Positions 10,399-15,512 of a DNA stretch of 64,000 nucleotides are shown piece by piece (within the stretch, counting starts at the first letter, position 1; every line of letters begins with the position of its first letter). Both the position numbers and the translations under genes were made by a program. This stretch comes from Tetramitus jugosus (Eukaryota > Protista > Heterolobosea): positions 1-64,000 of the forward strand of contig OW569382.1 of the NCBI GenBank assembly GCA_937625935.1, given 5' to 3'. The notes beneath the pieces are model-generated. The model was not told the origin of the DNA. It did not search any database and worked only from the letters and a program-made list of their open reading frames with translations.

Positions 10399-11262
10399 TT
10401 ATTCGACAACTGTTGATGGATAGTAAGCGACTTCCAGAGCAAGTTCTCCTTCGAAAAAATTCAATGGTACATGCTTTGGCGGCATCTCAGTTGAGTCCTC
10501 GCCAATGTCGTCAACAGTGCGTTCACCAAGAGCATCTACAATAATATTTAACAAAGATATGGAGGATTCCTGTACAATACGATTCTTTGTTCTCGCACCT
10601 TCTTCATCATTAACCAATGGCACTACAATCGCATCTGGAAATCGACCTCTCACAGCTTTGTTAAACTTTTTGAACTCTACTTCTTCGTTCATTTGATTAA
10701 TGGCATGTTCCTTATCCCTCTCCAGTTTAATGTCTTTCAATTGGGGTGACTTATCCATCTTTGTAACAGCAAACAGAACAACACATTTCTGTTCTTGAGC
10801 TTCTTTCACAAAGGGTTCGTGATCATCCAATAACGCTGCAATAGGAGATCCGCTAATTGTCAGATAATCAACCACAAAGACCACGACATCAATCAGATAG
10901 TTAATGTTTCTTTCACTAGGTGTAGAGTCAGTCATTTTCTGACCATTCTTGAACTTTCCAGTCAGAATATGTCCATACTCTCCTTTTAGATAGTTTGCAT
11001 TCTTCTTAAAGCCCCAAACATCAACCAAAACAATGTTAGAGTTCTTAATCTCATAGTGTCGGTACTCTTGAGTTAATGTCTCATTCTGGGTCTTATCAGA
11101 TTCATTGCGAACAGCGCACCTTCGACTCACTTTTGTCCCTTCCTCACCGTTGGAGTCAATGTTGTTGATGAGCGAAGATTTGCCCATAGCTGAATCTCCA
11201 AAGAGGAGAACATACACTTTTTTCCTAAAGCTTGGTTTATAATTTTGATAGGGTTGTGCCAT
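10399..11262 (-). CDS. IFI44-like P-loop GTPase
   Basis: G1 GDSAMGKSS, LTQEYRHYEI, G3 LVDVWG, ILTG, IDVVVFVVD, G4 VTKMD; motif order matches the IFI44/IFI44L GTPase domain; first ATG 11262. Confidence 0.75.
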   Translation of the reverse strand: MAQPYQNYKPSFRKKVYVLLFGDSAMGKSSLINNIDSNGEEGTKVSRRCAVRNESDKTQNETLTQEYRHYEIKNSNIVLVDVWGFKKNANYLKGEYGHILTGKFKNGQKMTDSTPSERNINYLIDVVVFVVDYLTISGSPIAALLDDHEPFVKEAQEQKCVVLFAVTKMDKSPQLKDIKLERDKEHAINQMNEEVEFKKFNKAVRGRFPDAIVVPLVNDEEGARTKNRIVQESSISLLNIIVDALGERTVDDIGEDSTEMPPKHVPLNFFEGELALEVAYYPSTVVE

Positions 11263-11450
11263 TCTTATCGTGTTTTTTCTGTGATTTTTGTTGCCTGATG
11301 TGAAGGTTTTTGTTCTGGAGCGGGATATACTGTCAATCTGCAAGGGTTGTAATCTAGTTGTTGTAATATTATTCCGTTCATTGAACAACCGTCAGGGCTC
11401 TTTTTTCTTCTTGAAACAACAAGAACAAAACACCAACAAGAAACAACAAG

Positions 11451-12544
11451 ATGGATTTTTATCGACTCTTAACCATTTGTGGACTTAATTGGAGACTCTA
11501 TGCCTCAGCAGGATTCAATGATTGTAATGAACCTGTATGGAAGCTCCACTTGACCAATTACGAAAAAAAAGTCAAGTTTGAAGCCTTCGTTTTGTCTCGC
11601 GAGGATACTCCCGACATGAAGCAGCACTTGGAGAGTGTCTTCCATGAAAAATGTTCTCTGGTCTACGAGTTTCTGTCTCCCACAGTCACACAAAGTCGCG
11701 TCTCCTCAAAAGTATTCGATTCAACAACTCAGCAGGTCAATATATCAGTCCTATCAGGGATTCCATTTGTGTTCCAAAAGACTCCCTACAACCACCCGGA
11801 GGAGATGGCGATAGAGAGGCTCATTTTCATTCAAAAGAAACCAATAGAACTCCAAAATGAATTACTCAAAACTATTGATTCGTTGAAAGAGAAGATTGTT
11901 GTCTTGGAAAAAGAACTGGCGGAAACAAAAGCAACGTTAGTACCAAGTTCCATACTAGCTAACAATCAATCTTACATTGCCCATATTGGACGATGGCTTA
12001 AGCAATCAGGGTTTAGCAAAACTTCTCTGCTGTACAGAGCATCAACAAATGGATGGACCGCTCAAAATTTTCACTCAACATGTGATAACAGAGGTCCTAC
12101 TTTAACTATCATTCGTTCGTCTTTGAACTATATTTTTGGCGGCTTTACAACCCATCCATGGAATTCTTCTAACACCTATGCGTCAGGGAATGCCCACTCA
12201 TGGTTGTTTTCTCTGTTTAATGCAGCGGGATTGGGACCAATTCAATTACTCAACATCAATGCAAATTCTCAGCACAACCACTCAACTCAAGGACCGACCT
12301 TTGGGTCTGGACATGACTTTCGTATGTATATCTGACTTGCAACTAGTTTTGATCAAATTAGCTCACCATTTCTTTGTTAGATATCTCCAACGGATCAAAC
12401 ACAAACAACAGTAGCTACTCCAACTTGGGAAATTCTTATAGAACTCCGTTGGGTATCTATGGATCCGATGAAGCCAGAAATTTTCTGGCTGGAAGTTACA
12501 GTTTTACTGTTTCGGAAATTGAAGTGTTCCTTGTTCACAATTAA
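11451..12544 (+). CDS. TLDc-domain protein with coiled coil (2 exons, ~344 aa)
   Basis: LLYRASTNGW..FHSTCDNRGPTLTII..IFGGFT..W..GPTFGSGHDF; intron 12322-12380 (GTATGT...TTAG) restores the C-terminus ...FLAGSYSFTVSEIEVFLVHN* with TAA at 12542-12544. Confidence 0.9.
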
Positions 12545-14260
12545 GGTTCCTAAAGAGAGCGGGGCTCGTATAAATGAAAACTTGCTGGACAGAAAACACG
12601 AAAAATCATCAAATAAAGACCCTGTATCATCAAATTATCACCCAACAACACAATAAATCAAACAACATTATGCCTCGTGGTGTGCCTAAAAATGGCAAGA
12701 GGAAGAGAAAGACCCTAGAAAAGGAGAAATACTCGTCACACTCTGTCACACTCGAGCAAAGGTTAAGAAAGTATCTGAGAGTAAGAATGAACGAACTACA
12801 CAAAAACTCATCTATTCCAAAGTCTGAATACAGAAGAGTTGTGGAATATCATCAAAAGGTTAACATTCACTGCTCCAGTTTATGATTTTATCAAACTTCC
12901 ACCCAAGGAGTTGATTGAGATCATTCCTGTGTTGACTCAAGAGATTCGAACACTTGTTGGTGTTGAAACTGACAAGATAATGAATCTTTTGTGGAGAACA
13001 ACACCAACAACATGCTGAAATTTTACTGGCATGTTCAACGATTTGTCATTAACAATAACGAAATTATTTGCACTGCTTCCTTTGTCTCACTTCAAATGCA
13101 GGTGCATGGAAATTGGCACAGAAGAATTGGTTAAGATGCTCCAACGGGCAACGTATCCAAATAGAAGAAAGAACGAAATTCGGGAACCGATAGAATTCAG
13201 ATACAACCTCAAGCGCTTGCACATTGGTGAAAAGAAAATCCAAATAGACTCGATCAGAACTGACGGCATTCAGGTCTCTGTTGTTCTCAGACATAAACTT
13301 GTTGGAAAACACAAAAACAATAAGGCAAAGGAATCCAAGGGCCAAAAAGAAGCAAAGAAGAGCACAAAGAAACAACCGCCATGATTGGTATTGACCCTGG
13401 TATTGTTACATTGTTGAGTTGTGCTGATTCAGATGGCAAGAAGTGGGAGTTCTCTAACAAGACATACAGACATCTGTCACATCATTCAAAAAACTAAGTT
13501 GTTGAACACAAAGCAGAATGGAACAGAAAGAATGGAAAAGATTTAGATGAACTCCACAACTCGATCAAACAAGCCAGTGTATCGACAAGTGATCCATTCC
13601 TCGAACACATTGATTCTGTGATGAAGGTTGAGGATGATTTGTTGGATTTTTATTGCAGCCCAAAGGTGAAGAGACCGAACTGGGACAGCTATATCATGAG
13701 AGACAAAACAATCGCTAACGTTATGAATGATCTTCACAAGAGAGCAAATGGAAGAAAGATGATCATAGGGATGGGCAATGCCGGTTTCAAAAGTTATTTC
13801 AAAGGACACGCTCCAACACCAAAGGACAAATTGCTGAAAAAATTGAATGAACGATTTGACGTGAAGGTGATTGACGAGTTTATGACCAGTCAGACTTGTT
13901 GTGCATGCCATTTTCAGCTCAAGCCAGTGAAGCATAAGAGGCCAGACAAGAATGGAGTATCGGCAATATCTATTGTACGAGGAGTTAAACAGTGTGCAAC
14001 CACTAAATGTTTAGTCACTCACAATAGAGACCTCAACTTGCTTTGTCTTTTGAGAACAGAAATCAATGGACAACCACGGCCAGTTGTCTTCAAGAGGAAG
14101 ACAAGGGTCGCAAAACAATTGAATCGAATGGTGGAACACCTCCAAGGCTCATTCTATCATATAAATCCCAATTATATAGTAGCGTTAAGGTCAGGGAAGG
14201 GCGGTATTTTGGGAACCATATTTTTTATTGTGGACGGATGGGAGTAGACCGCCACCTTAA
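12541..14260 (+). mobile_element. Non-autonomous Fanzor1-carrying element flanked by TTAA
   Basis: TTAA at 12541-12544 and 14257-14260; element ends GGT...ACC; interior is a Fanzor ORF plus a structured 3' end; removal leaves a 40 bp spacer between two convergent stop codons. Confidence 0.8.
12670..14247 (+). pseudogene. Fanzor1 (TnpB-like RNA-guided RuvC nuclease), disrupted
   Basis: Basic N-terminus MPRGVPKNGKRKRK; FALLP..F and IRTDGIQVSV motifs; RuvC-I IGIDPG (13384-13401); GHAPTP; RuvC-II VIDEFMTS (E at 13876); zinc finger CCAC...CATTKC; RuvC-III NRDLN (14023-14037); RPVVFKR. Frameshifts upstream of RuvC-I and a nonsense TAA at 13495-13497. Confidence 0.88.
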
Positions 14261-14280
14261 GTTAGATAAAGCATCAATAT
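14100..14280 (+). ncRNA. Candidate Fanzor omegaRNA scaffold plus flank-derived guide
   Basis: TTAAGGT (14185-14191) pairs with ACCTTAA (14254-14260); GGCGGT (14200-14205) pairs with ACCGCC (14248-14253); TCCCA (14166-14170) can pair with TGGGA (14210 or 14239). Located at the element right end as in TnpB/Fanzor systems; 5' boundary uncertain. Confidence 0.55.
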
Positions 14281-14300: not shown

Positions 14301-15512
14301 TTAGGTAGCAATTGATTGCAGAAGTTCCTCTAGTAACTTTAGTTGCTCCTCATTCTTCTCCTGATACTGCATATCGATACACATCATATCTGCTTCACTC
14401 TTAAACACAGCAAGATAAATAACCCGTTTTTTCTCTCTGGGTTGCTCTAAGTGGACGCCTGACGGAAACTCTTGTTTTTGCAAGTTCCAATACTCCCATT
14501 CAGCTCCCTGTCGTACCCTGAGATTCACCAACACCATATGTATCACACTATTAGTTGAGGAGTGAGCCCTCAAATTGGCTACAATTTCGCTGTAGTCAAA
14601 TAAATTGGGAGCTCCGACAACTAAACTAATATGCAAAACAGCATTTGACGGTGAGCCCTCTTGCGTATGGATATCTGGATACTTGTTAATATGAGATTCT
14701 ATTCCCAATCGCTTCATTCGCTCCGTTAGTACTTCACCAAAAGAGTTGTCCAAATATCTAAAATTCACAATATCCAAGGTGATCTTTTTCTGCTGTTGAT
14801 TCTTAGGGTACACCACCGAAGAAGAGTTCCACCGACTAATATGAGAGGAGTGCTCAAGATTCAGCTGATGAGCTCCATTGGAAGAAAAGAATTGATTTCT
14901 ATCTCTTGAAAAGTTGGTATGGATATCCCTTTGAGTAGTGGTACTGTGATTGATGAAAGGACCCAAGGATTGTACTGTAACTACCCTTTCTTCACTCTGA
15001 ATCGAACCGCTCTTGATCGTGTAACTGAATGTTCTTTGTTCTTGAATATCAAAATCTTGATATCCAGCTTCAGCAACCAGTGCTATCCATTTTCCGTCTC
15101 GAAACACATTGAAGACAAGTTTGGAGGTATCTCTCCCTGCCAAAGAGTAATCCCATACCAATTCAACCATGTTACCAACCAAAGAAGCACGGAAGTTCGA
15201 GAAACGACTGGATGAATACCAGAAACTGGAACAGGGAATTATGGTTCCAACCCTTTTCTGTACCGCGTTATTCTTTGGTGGCTGAGGCACAATCGATGCT
15301 CTGCCATATTTTTGTTCGAAAAGCGATTGAAAGTGGGAATACGATTGAACCAGATCTCTGTCAAGTTCTTTGACTTGTTCGCGTTGAGCCCAGTGAGGAT
15401 TTATGTTCGTGAGTTCACGCAGTAATGTGATGGTTTGGATGGCATCACTTTTCCTATTGACATGTGTTAGAGCACGGAAACAAAAACATGATGATACAGG
15501 AACACAAACCAT
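14301..15512 (-). CDS. Hypothetical protein with a fibronectin type III-like segment
   Basis: 403 aa ORF; VELVWDY...FNVFRDGKWIA...YQD....TFSYTIKS resembles FN3. Confidence 0.6.
   Translation of the reverse strand: MVCVPVSSCFCFRALTHVNRKSDAIQTITLLRELTNINPHWAQREQVKELDRDLVQSYSHFQSLFEQKYGRASIVPQPPKNNAVQKRVGTIIPCSSFWYSSSRFSNFRASLVGNMVELVWDYSLAGRDTSKLVFNVFRDGKWIALVAEAGYQDFDIQEQRTFSYTIKSGSIQSEERVVTVQSLGPFINHSTTTQRDIHTNFSRDRNQFFSSNGAHQLNLEHSSHISRWNSSSVVYPKNQQQKKITLDIVNFRYLDNSFGEVLTERMKRLGIESHINKYPDIHTQEGSPSNAVLHISLVVGAPNLFDYSEIVANLRAHSSTNSVIHMVLVNLRVRQGAEWEYWNLQKQEFPSGVHLEQPREKKRVIYLAVFKSEADMMCIDMQYQEKNEEQLKLLEELLQSIAT

Follow-up and report, generated by a model that had tools for sequence, protein, structure and literature searches.

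What does a Fanzor1 nuclease do for a transposable element that carries no transposase of its own? The question is raised by a stretch between two host genes of the heterolobosean protist Tetramitus jugosus, which we analysed within a window of 64,000 nucleotides (contig OW569382.1, positions 1 to 64,000; hereafter the window). It covers the telomeric beginning of contig C39 in a genome of 26.35 Mb and 56 contigs (the published assembly has 26.3 Mb and 52 chromosomes; PMC11106597). Its positions 1 to about 880 are a telomeric CCCAAA (TTTGGG) array, an uncommon repeat unit, and some 12 kb separate the element from the end of the chromosome.

A dead Fanzor1 element between two undamaged genes

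Two TTAA tetramers enclose 1712 bp with the termini GGT...ACC (Table 1), in agreement with the coordinates and ends given by an earlier, sequence-only reading of this DNA, and no transposase was found inside the window copy, as that reading had stated. Its description of the ends as fully readable is too generous for the left one: compared with the right end in reverse complement it agrees in just 5 of 13 positions, and it has no second occurrence in the genome, whereas intact siblings carry terminal inverted repeats (TIRs) of 12-15 bp. The left boundary that it proposed is sound: the subterminal CGTATAAAT lies at the same offset as in 16 sibling left ends, and the allele of a soil strain is rebuilt to a canonical end at the same position (see below).

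Table 1. Features of the element and its neighbours, in window coordinates
Feature	Position	Strand	Remarks
Host TLDc-domain gene	11451..12544	+	Pfam TLD, E 1e-19; 59-nt intron at 12322-12380
Left TTAA target-site duplication (TSD)	12541..12544	+	forms the predicted TAM (W-TTAA) together with the A before it
Left end, degenerate	12545..12575	+	remnant GGT of TIR A; scrambled sequence; subterminal CGTATAAAT (12567-12575)
Fanzor1 pseudogene	12670..14165	+	80-82% nucleotide identity to closest relatives
TDG motif, end of WED region	13259..13267	+	kept in siblings and SpuFz1
RuvC-I DPG, catalytic Asp	13393..13401	+	read as IDPG, D at 13393
RuvC-II alternative Glu, with CxxC six residues on	13876..13908	+	IDEF, E at 13876; fingerprint per PMC10711439
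Second half of the zinc finger, CxxxxC; RuvC-III NRD with catalytic Asp	13993..14031	+	D at 14029
Predicted omegaRNA scaffold	14150..14260	+	prediction; hairpin near 14161-14180, internal TTAAGG at 14185-14190, central hairpin
Right TIR, type A	14244..14256	+	terminates in GACCGCCACC
Right TTAA TSD	14257..14260	+	predicted last part of the RNA scaffold
Predicted guide (host flank)	14261..14276	+	equals the post-TTAA sequence of the empty site; inferred from PMC10711439
Convergent host gene	14301..15512	-	403 aa; no clear Pfam match; undisturbed

Neither neighbouring gene is damaged. Spliced contigs of the TLDc gene, present in three runs, continue into the left end of the element, and the spliced translation terminates in ...FLVHN. 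Because its TAA stop codon (12542-12544) is part of the left TTAA, the insertion leaves the TLDc protein intact. The convergent gene ends 40 bp past the right TTAA. On the far side, the TLDc gene lies head to head with a GTPase gene (MMR_HSR1; 10399-11388, minus strand), with about 60 bp between them.

The reading frame of the nuclease carries the fingerprint that defines Fanzors, namely DPG and a shifted Glu six residues before the zinc finger (PMC10711439), here as IDEFMTSQTCCAC, CATTKC and NRD. All motifs listed by the sequence-only reading (IDPG, IDEF and NRD of RuvC, CxxC/CxxxxC, TDG and a basic N-terminus, which begins at ATG 12670) were located, and the C-terminal piece matches Pfam Cas12f1-like TNB (E 1.2e-5). 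It had reported frameshifts and one TAA, which are there, but had understated the decay. Aligned with three relatives, the copy shows a 366-bp in-frame deletion at about 12746, corresponding to residues ~28-149 of intact siblings, together with about five frameshifts (near 12848, 12976, 13057, 13175 and 13363), small deletions near 13382 and at 13496-13505, the latter yielding an in-frame TAA near 13497, a 12-bp deletion at 14035 directly after NRD and a loss of 8 bp at 14159, besides the scrambled left TIR. With its deletion, frameshifts and stop it is a pseudogene: the Fanzor1 element is genuine, but this copy is dead. In the RuvC part, amino-acid identity to the nearest sibling (L003) is 86%, with dN/dS of 0.11 at dS of about 0.7, so that the copy is the sole remaining member of a distinct subfamily, formerly under selection. 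Reconstruction of this copy, suggested earlier, would start from a heavily deleted relic that is not the informative member, and is unnecessary since intact siblings exist.

The same insertion in a soil strain

Contigs from two metatranscriptomes, of a soil strain about 98% identical, carry the same site filled. Both runs rebuild to TTAA followed directly by GGTGGCGGTG, a canonical type-A TIR; the rebuild is partial, some difference rows being unseen, but no other register gives identical letters in both runs. The contigs match the window as far as 12646, beyond which they jump to 14308, 65 letters being unread. This filled allele with its canonical TIR confirms where the element begins on the left. 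It also shows that the insertion came before the two strains separated and that decay took a different course in each allele. The contigs included no empty version of the site.

Three other readings that concern the left end were discarded. A boundary near 12646, where the soil contigs skip, is ruled out by the rebuilding of the soil allele to a canonical TIR at 12545. The window left end is not a long target duplication, the agreement being limited to TTAA plus G. A sequence at C27:284028, one mismatch from the window left end, sits next to a tRNA-like stretch and was judged a chance match.

A family of about 40 loci with intact Fanzor1 genes

DNA and protein searches of the genome place the window copy in a family of about 40 loci, at least 19 of which hold full open reading frames of 628-649 aa, so that the multi-copy family with intact siblings foreseen by the sequence-only reading does exist. 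These siblings are ordinary in size for Fanzor1 proteins (about 600-800 aa; PMC10711439) rather than compact, as they had been called. Complete siblings, 19 in number, measure 2.2-4.6 kb. Values of dN/dS between intact siblings (0.09-0.27) indicate purifying selection, and the proteins are mosaic, divergent N-terminal halves being joined to identical C-terminal halves. IDPG is present in the window copy and in 20 of 21 aligned proteins, with no motif match in L018.

The family is almost certainly Fanzor1, as had been proposed from the letters. In addition to the fingerprint described above, a sibling matches SpuFz1 over residues 131-614 (phmmer E 1.1e-15) and in a profile comparison at E 6e-28, far ahead of all else. 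A Foldseek search with an AlphaFold model of a sibling, of low confidence (pLDDT 56) and used solely for a coarse fold search, placed Fz1 structures (SpuFz1, PpFz1 and GtFz1) in the first seven positions, before Cas12f and TnpB.

Close relatives beyond the genome are few (59-85% identity, in metagenomes); two terminate in CCGCCACC followed by TTAA, as the family does, and two in another right end. The metagenomic loci L052:2437-4560 and L054:1631-3897, which encode Fanzors 63-64% identical, have a right end reading ...CTACTCTAT without TTAA; either this clade moved to another carrier or its ends were lost. At G000:C32:2808-4989 (L045), a type-B element encodes a divergent Fanzor1 (39-44% identity) with one frameshift, and a JGI metagenome (L081) has the same allele. 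At L031:3169-3903, the C22 element lies directly upstream of, or inside, a RING-finger gene.

Ends, cargo and the carrier

Two types of TIR occur in the family, A (GGTGGC[C/G]GTC...) and B (GGATGTAGTTCG), each 12-15 bp long, of the form GG...CC and flanked by TTAA. The right end GACCGCCACC followed by TTAA recurs at independent loci, more than 20 of them, whose flanks are unrelated, and TTAA duplications are present at siblings; both were the outcome that the earlier reading had expected from a check of independent loci. Long regions upstream of the nuclease, read for nine elements, are mosaics of host pieces (VPS35, E 1e-51; flanks of other insertion sites) and hold no transposase. A small zinc-ribbon reading frame in the type-B left ends is confined to those elements. 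There is no recombinase in the elements examined, which are TIR/TSD elements, unlike IS607 with its serine recombinase.

The combination of a TTAA TSD with RR...YY termini defines Kolobok, a superfamily present in Naegleria, and the source of this rule contrasts it with piggyBac (PMC9587614). The family displays the TTAA TSD and RR...YY termini with short TIRs, while the window copy retains only GGT...ACC. We infer that the element was moved in trans by a DDE transposase, most likely of Kolobok type. Mobilisation in trans, as proposed before, is supported; for the enzyme, then called unknown, the Kolobok-type RR...YY ends give a more definite pointer. The autonomous partner sharing these ends, for which a search had been recommended, did not appear. 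A PF20700 profile search of the genome gave no candidate, its control being likewise without any match; relaxed end patterns across the genome recovered only Fanzor elements and one 85-bp mini-element; and scans of metagenomes and viruses yielded no transposase-bearing relative, the five viral pattern matches being close to chance level by estimate. As the searches brought up no transposase that shares these ends, the Kolobok assignment is drawn from the ends, and membership of that superfamily stays provisional.

A carrier derived from piggyBac, moved by one of the piggyBac-type transposases of this genome, would share the TTAA duplication. The genome does encode PF13843 piggyBac-type genes with open frames of 582-968 aa, and piggyBac is given as a Fanzor carrier in PMC13565253, whereas Kolobok is absent from the carriers in that source and in PMC3627910. 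The ends of the examined piggyBac loci (found for two of three) start with C, however, and resemble neither TIR A nor TIR B, and GG...CC agrees with the Kolobok rule (PMC9587614), so that we regard a piggyBac origin as quite unlikely.

Several loci deserve separate mention. A piggyBac-type transposase of 582 aa, with two equal-scoring matches (G000:C18:38324-40259, L058, and C39:393561), has a 19-bp inverted repeat with outer four bases AATT, not TTAA. Piggybac-type transposases at G000:C18:149500-151700 (L057) and C30:266267 have frames of 729 and 968 aa, and their catalytic domain contains a large Cys-rich insertion. The mini-element at G000:C31:454915-455010 (L071), of about 85 bp, has GGTGGC TIRs and a degenerate omegaRNA-like interior and is a possible ghost locus. 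At G000:C8:461447-461770 (L068), a 319-bp ghost copy is internally deleted, and a metagenome contig (L080) shows the same site with another internal deletion.

A predicted omegaRNA that takes in the terminal TTAA

The omegaRNA would derive from the right end of the element, with the host flank as guide. In all eight right ends compared, pairing is possible between the internal TTAAGG and the terminal CCTTAA, TSD included; it would place the TSD inside the scaffold, as reported for other Fanzor1s (PMC10711439). Hairpin 1 shows an exchange of G-C for A-U between the window copy and L053. The predicted scaffold fold of the window copy is weakened and does not surpass that of shuffled sequences (z of -0.1), whereas the folds of relatives do (z of -1.7 to -5.6). 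RNAalifold on an automatic alignment was weak and gave no useful consensus. The terminal stem is invariant and hence shows no covariation.

A TAM that would spare the element itself

A filled right end reads CC-TTAA followed by the target, so that a nuclease with a plain TTAA TAM would cut its own element; the TAM is therefore probably longer than the 5'-TTAA predicted by the sequence-only reading. The flanks point to (T/A)TTAA. The base at -1 of the left TTAA is T or A in 30 of 32 cases, C in two and G in none, against a background of 38% C+G (p 5e-5), whereas the base at +1 of the right TTAA is G in 16 of 38. The difference between C at -1 (2/32) and G at +1 (16/38) is significant by Fisher's test (p 7e-4; TIR-intact copies alone, p 1e-3). 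A symmetric preference of the transposase would make the two frequencies equal, in contrast to what is observed; an oriented transposase could give identical flank asymmetry. On the simplest reading, the TAM would be (T/A)TTAA, sparing the CC-TTAA end of the element, and insertions with C at -1 would not be restored and hence be lost. The sole TIR-intact copy with C before its left TTAA, at G000:C24:244775-248274 (L020, L042), has a damaged right TTAA (CC-TT-GG), a single case.

Target duplications at copies with only a right end

Copies with a right end only outnumber those with a left end only by 17 to 2 (p 7e-4), left ends having been sought by independent genome-wide patterns. At six of the 17 right-end-only copies, TTAA and the first 9-22 nt of the copy's own right flank, which is its predicted target, are found again at the left junction. 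The duplications extend to +9 (C48 and C2), +11 (C52), +12 (C3), +16 (C24) and +21/22 (C25); the C2 junction was placed by hand once the duplication was known, so that five of 17 remain if it is set aside. None of 272 mismatched flank/junction pairs used as a control reaches 10 matching bases. The long duplication is absent from the other 11 of 17, and no mirror duplication was found at the two left-end-only copies. Two of the six scarred copies consist merely of the last 33 and ~125 bases of the element. The ceiling on duplication length (at most +22) fits the cut positions of SpuFz1 and GtFz1, which lie at 14-21 nt (PMC10432273).

The duplicated junction at C2, with about 190 bp of its left flank, recurs inside complete type-A elements, which suggests that truncated copies may again acquire a left end further upstream and in this way take up host DNA. 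One further right-end fragment, at G000:C10:247203-247330 (L047), shares nine bases at its left junction with its own target at +15 to +23, without TTAA.

A model of restorative homing and its alternatives

We think it likely, from the comparison of genomic copies, that the window element is a dead copy of a non-autonomous cut-and-paste transposon carrying Fanzor1, in a family that undergoes restorative homing by Fanzor1. In this model, a DDE transposase, most likely of Kolobok type, would excise and insert the element in trans. The transcribed right end would give an omegaRNA whose scaffold takes in the TIR and TTAA and whose guide is the host flank. The site after excision would then present W-TTAA and a match to the guide, and Fanzor would cut it about 14-21 nt downstream, upon which copy-back repair would restore the element, with the sister chromatid or homologue as template. 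Repair would begin more easily at the right-hand broken end, and aborted repair would leave a right-end-only copy with TTAA and up to ~21 target bases duplicated, whereas the filled right end, CC-TTAA, would escape cutting because the TAM excludes C at -1. Restorative homing has been shown for the bacterial TnpB and IscB only (2026 review, PMC13565253), and our literature search found no report of it for Fanzor. A further claim, to which we give about even credence, has three parts: that the junctions record Fanzor1 cutting emptied donor sites in vivo and driving copy-back, that a TAM extended by one base (W-TTAA versus the element's own CC-TTAA) solves self-targeting in a Kolobok-type carrier, and that aborted products regaining an upstream left end explain the capture of host DNA.

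The main rival holds that the scarred truncated copies are one-ended or aborted insertions by the transposase, in which the right end was joined at TTAA and host repair closed the other side, Fanzor being a passenger or cutting other targets. It too yields a duplication beginning exactly at TTAA, it is how Bao and Jurka read the 7-19-bp duplications at 5'-truncated Chlamydomonas Fanzor elements (PMC3627910), and it accords with the 11 of 17 right-end-only copies that have no scar. It also predicts left-end-only copies with mirror duplications, however, where the ratio is 17:2 and no mirror was seen, and it predicts no ceiling on length, where every duplication stays within +22; purifying selection on the nuclease and the missing C at -1 are left unexplained. 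We consider this reading unlikely. Truncation at the 5' end and duplications of variable length are also typical signatures of LINEs, and the truncated copies might be retroposed transcripts made by LINE target-primed reverse transcription, which would likewise give 13-25-bp duplications at TTAA-like sites. Such copies would bring along the flank of the donor, whereas the right flank here is that of the new site; moreover, the copies have no poly(A) tail and end exactly at the TIR, and in several the Fanzor start is preceded by 1-2 kb of cargo with strands mixed, which makes retroposition very improbable. For the window copy, which has lost both nuclease and left TIR, it follows that the element is now immobile and acts as the 3' UTR of the TLDc gene.

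Relation to known systems

One of the closest parallels is Spu-1 of Spizellomyces punctatus with its nuclease SpuFz1 (PMC10432273; PDB 8gkh), which like the present family combines a Fanzor1 of similar size with transposase-less TIR elements, many near-identical intact copies and ghost loci. Its TAM CATA (CA plus TA) reaches upstream of the TSD, as does the predicted W-TTAA. Spu-1 has 30-nt inverted repeats, whereas the family has a 4-bp TTAA TSD, GG...CC TIRs of 12-15 bp in two interchangeable types and host-gene cargo; identity to SpuFz1 in the structural alignment is about 17-19%. GtFz1 of Guillardia theta (PMC10432273, PMC11423790) has a TTAA-type TAM, predicted here as well, and the same Fanzor1 fold (Foldseek E 1e-7), but its loci lack inverted repeats and it has Asn at the third catalytic position, in contrast to the TIRs, TSDs and canonical Asp of the family. 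The CRe-1/2/3 elements of Chlamydomonas (PMC3627910) share 5'-truncated copies, 7-19-bp duplications after a fixed tetranucleotide and an excess of 3' ends; their carrier is a Helitron, and they were read as products of one-ended rolling-circle transposition before RNA-guided cutting was known. With the Kolobok superfamily (PMC9587614) the family shares the TTAA TSD, RR...YY and short TIRs, but its elements have neither transposase nor KolX. Homing by TnpB of IS200/605 and IS607 (PMC13565253) resembles the present proposal in its right-flank guide, left-flank TAM and cutting of the emptied site. For TnpB and IscB homing is experimental, whereas the evidence here is genomic and the putative carrier is a DDE cut-and-paste element with a TSD.

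The family bears on the natural role of Fanzors and makes the question of homing directly testable: the protist can be cultured, at least 19 of the enzymes are intact, the guides can be read, the TAM prediction is sharp (W-TTAA, not C-TTAA) and the scar lengths predict the cut site. The window copy is valuable because it points to the family and because a wild strain shares its site, in differently decayed form. If the proposed reading is true, Kolobok-type ends would join the carriers of Fanzors.
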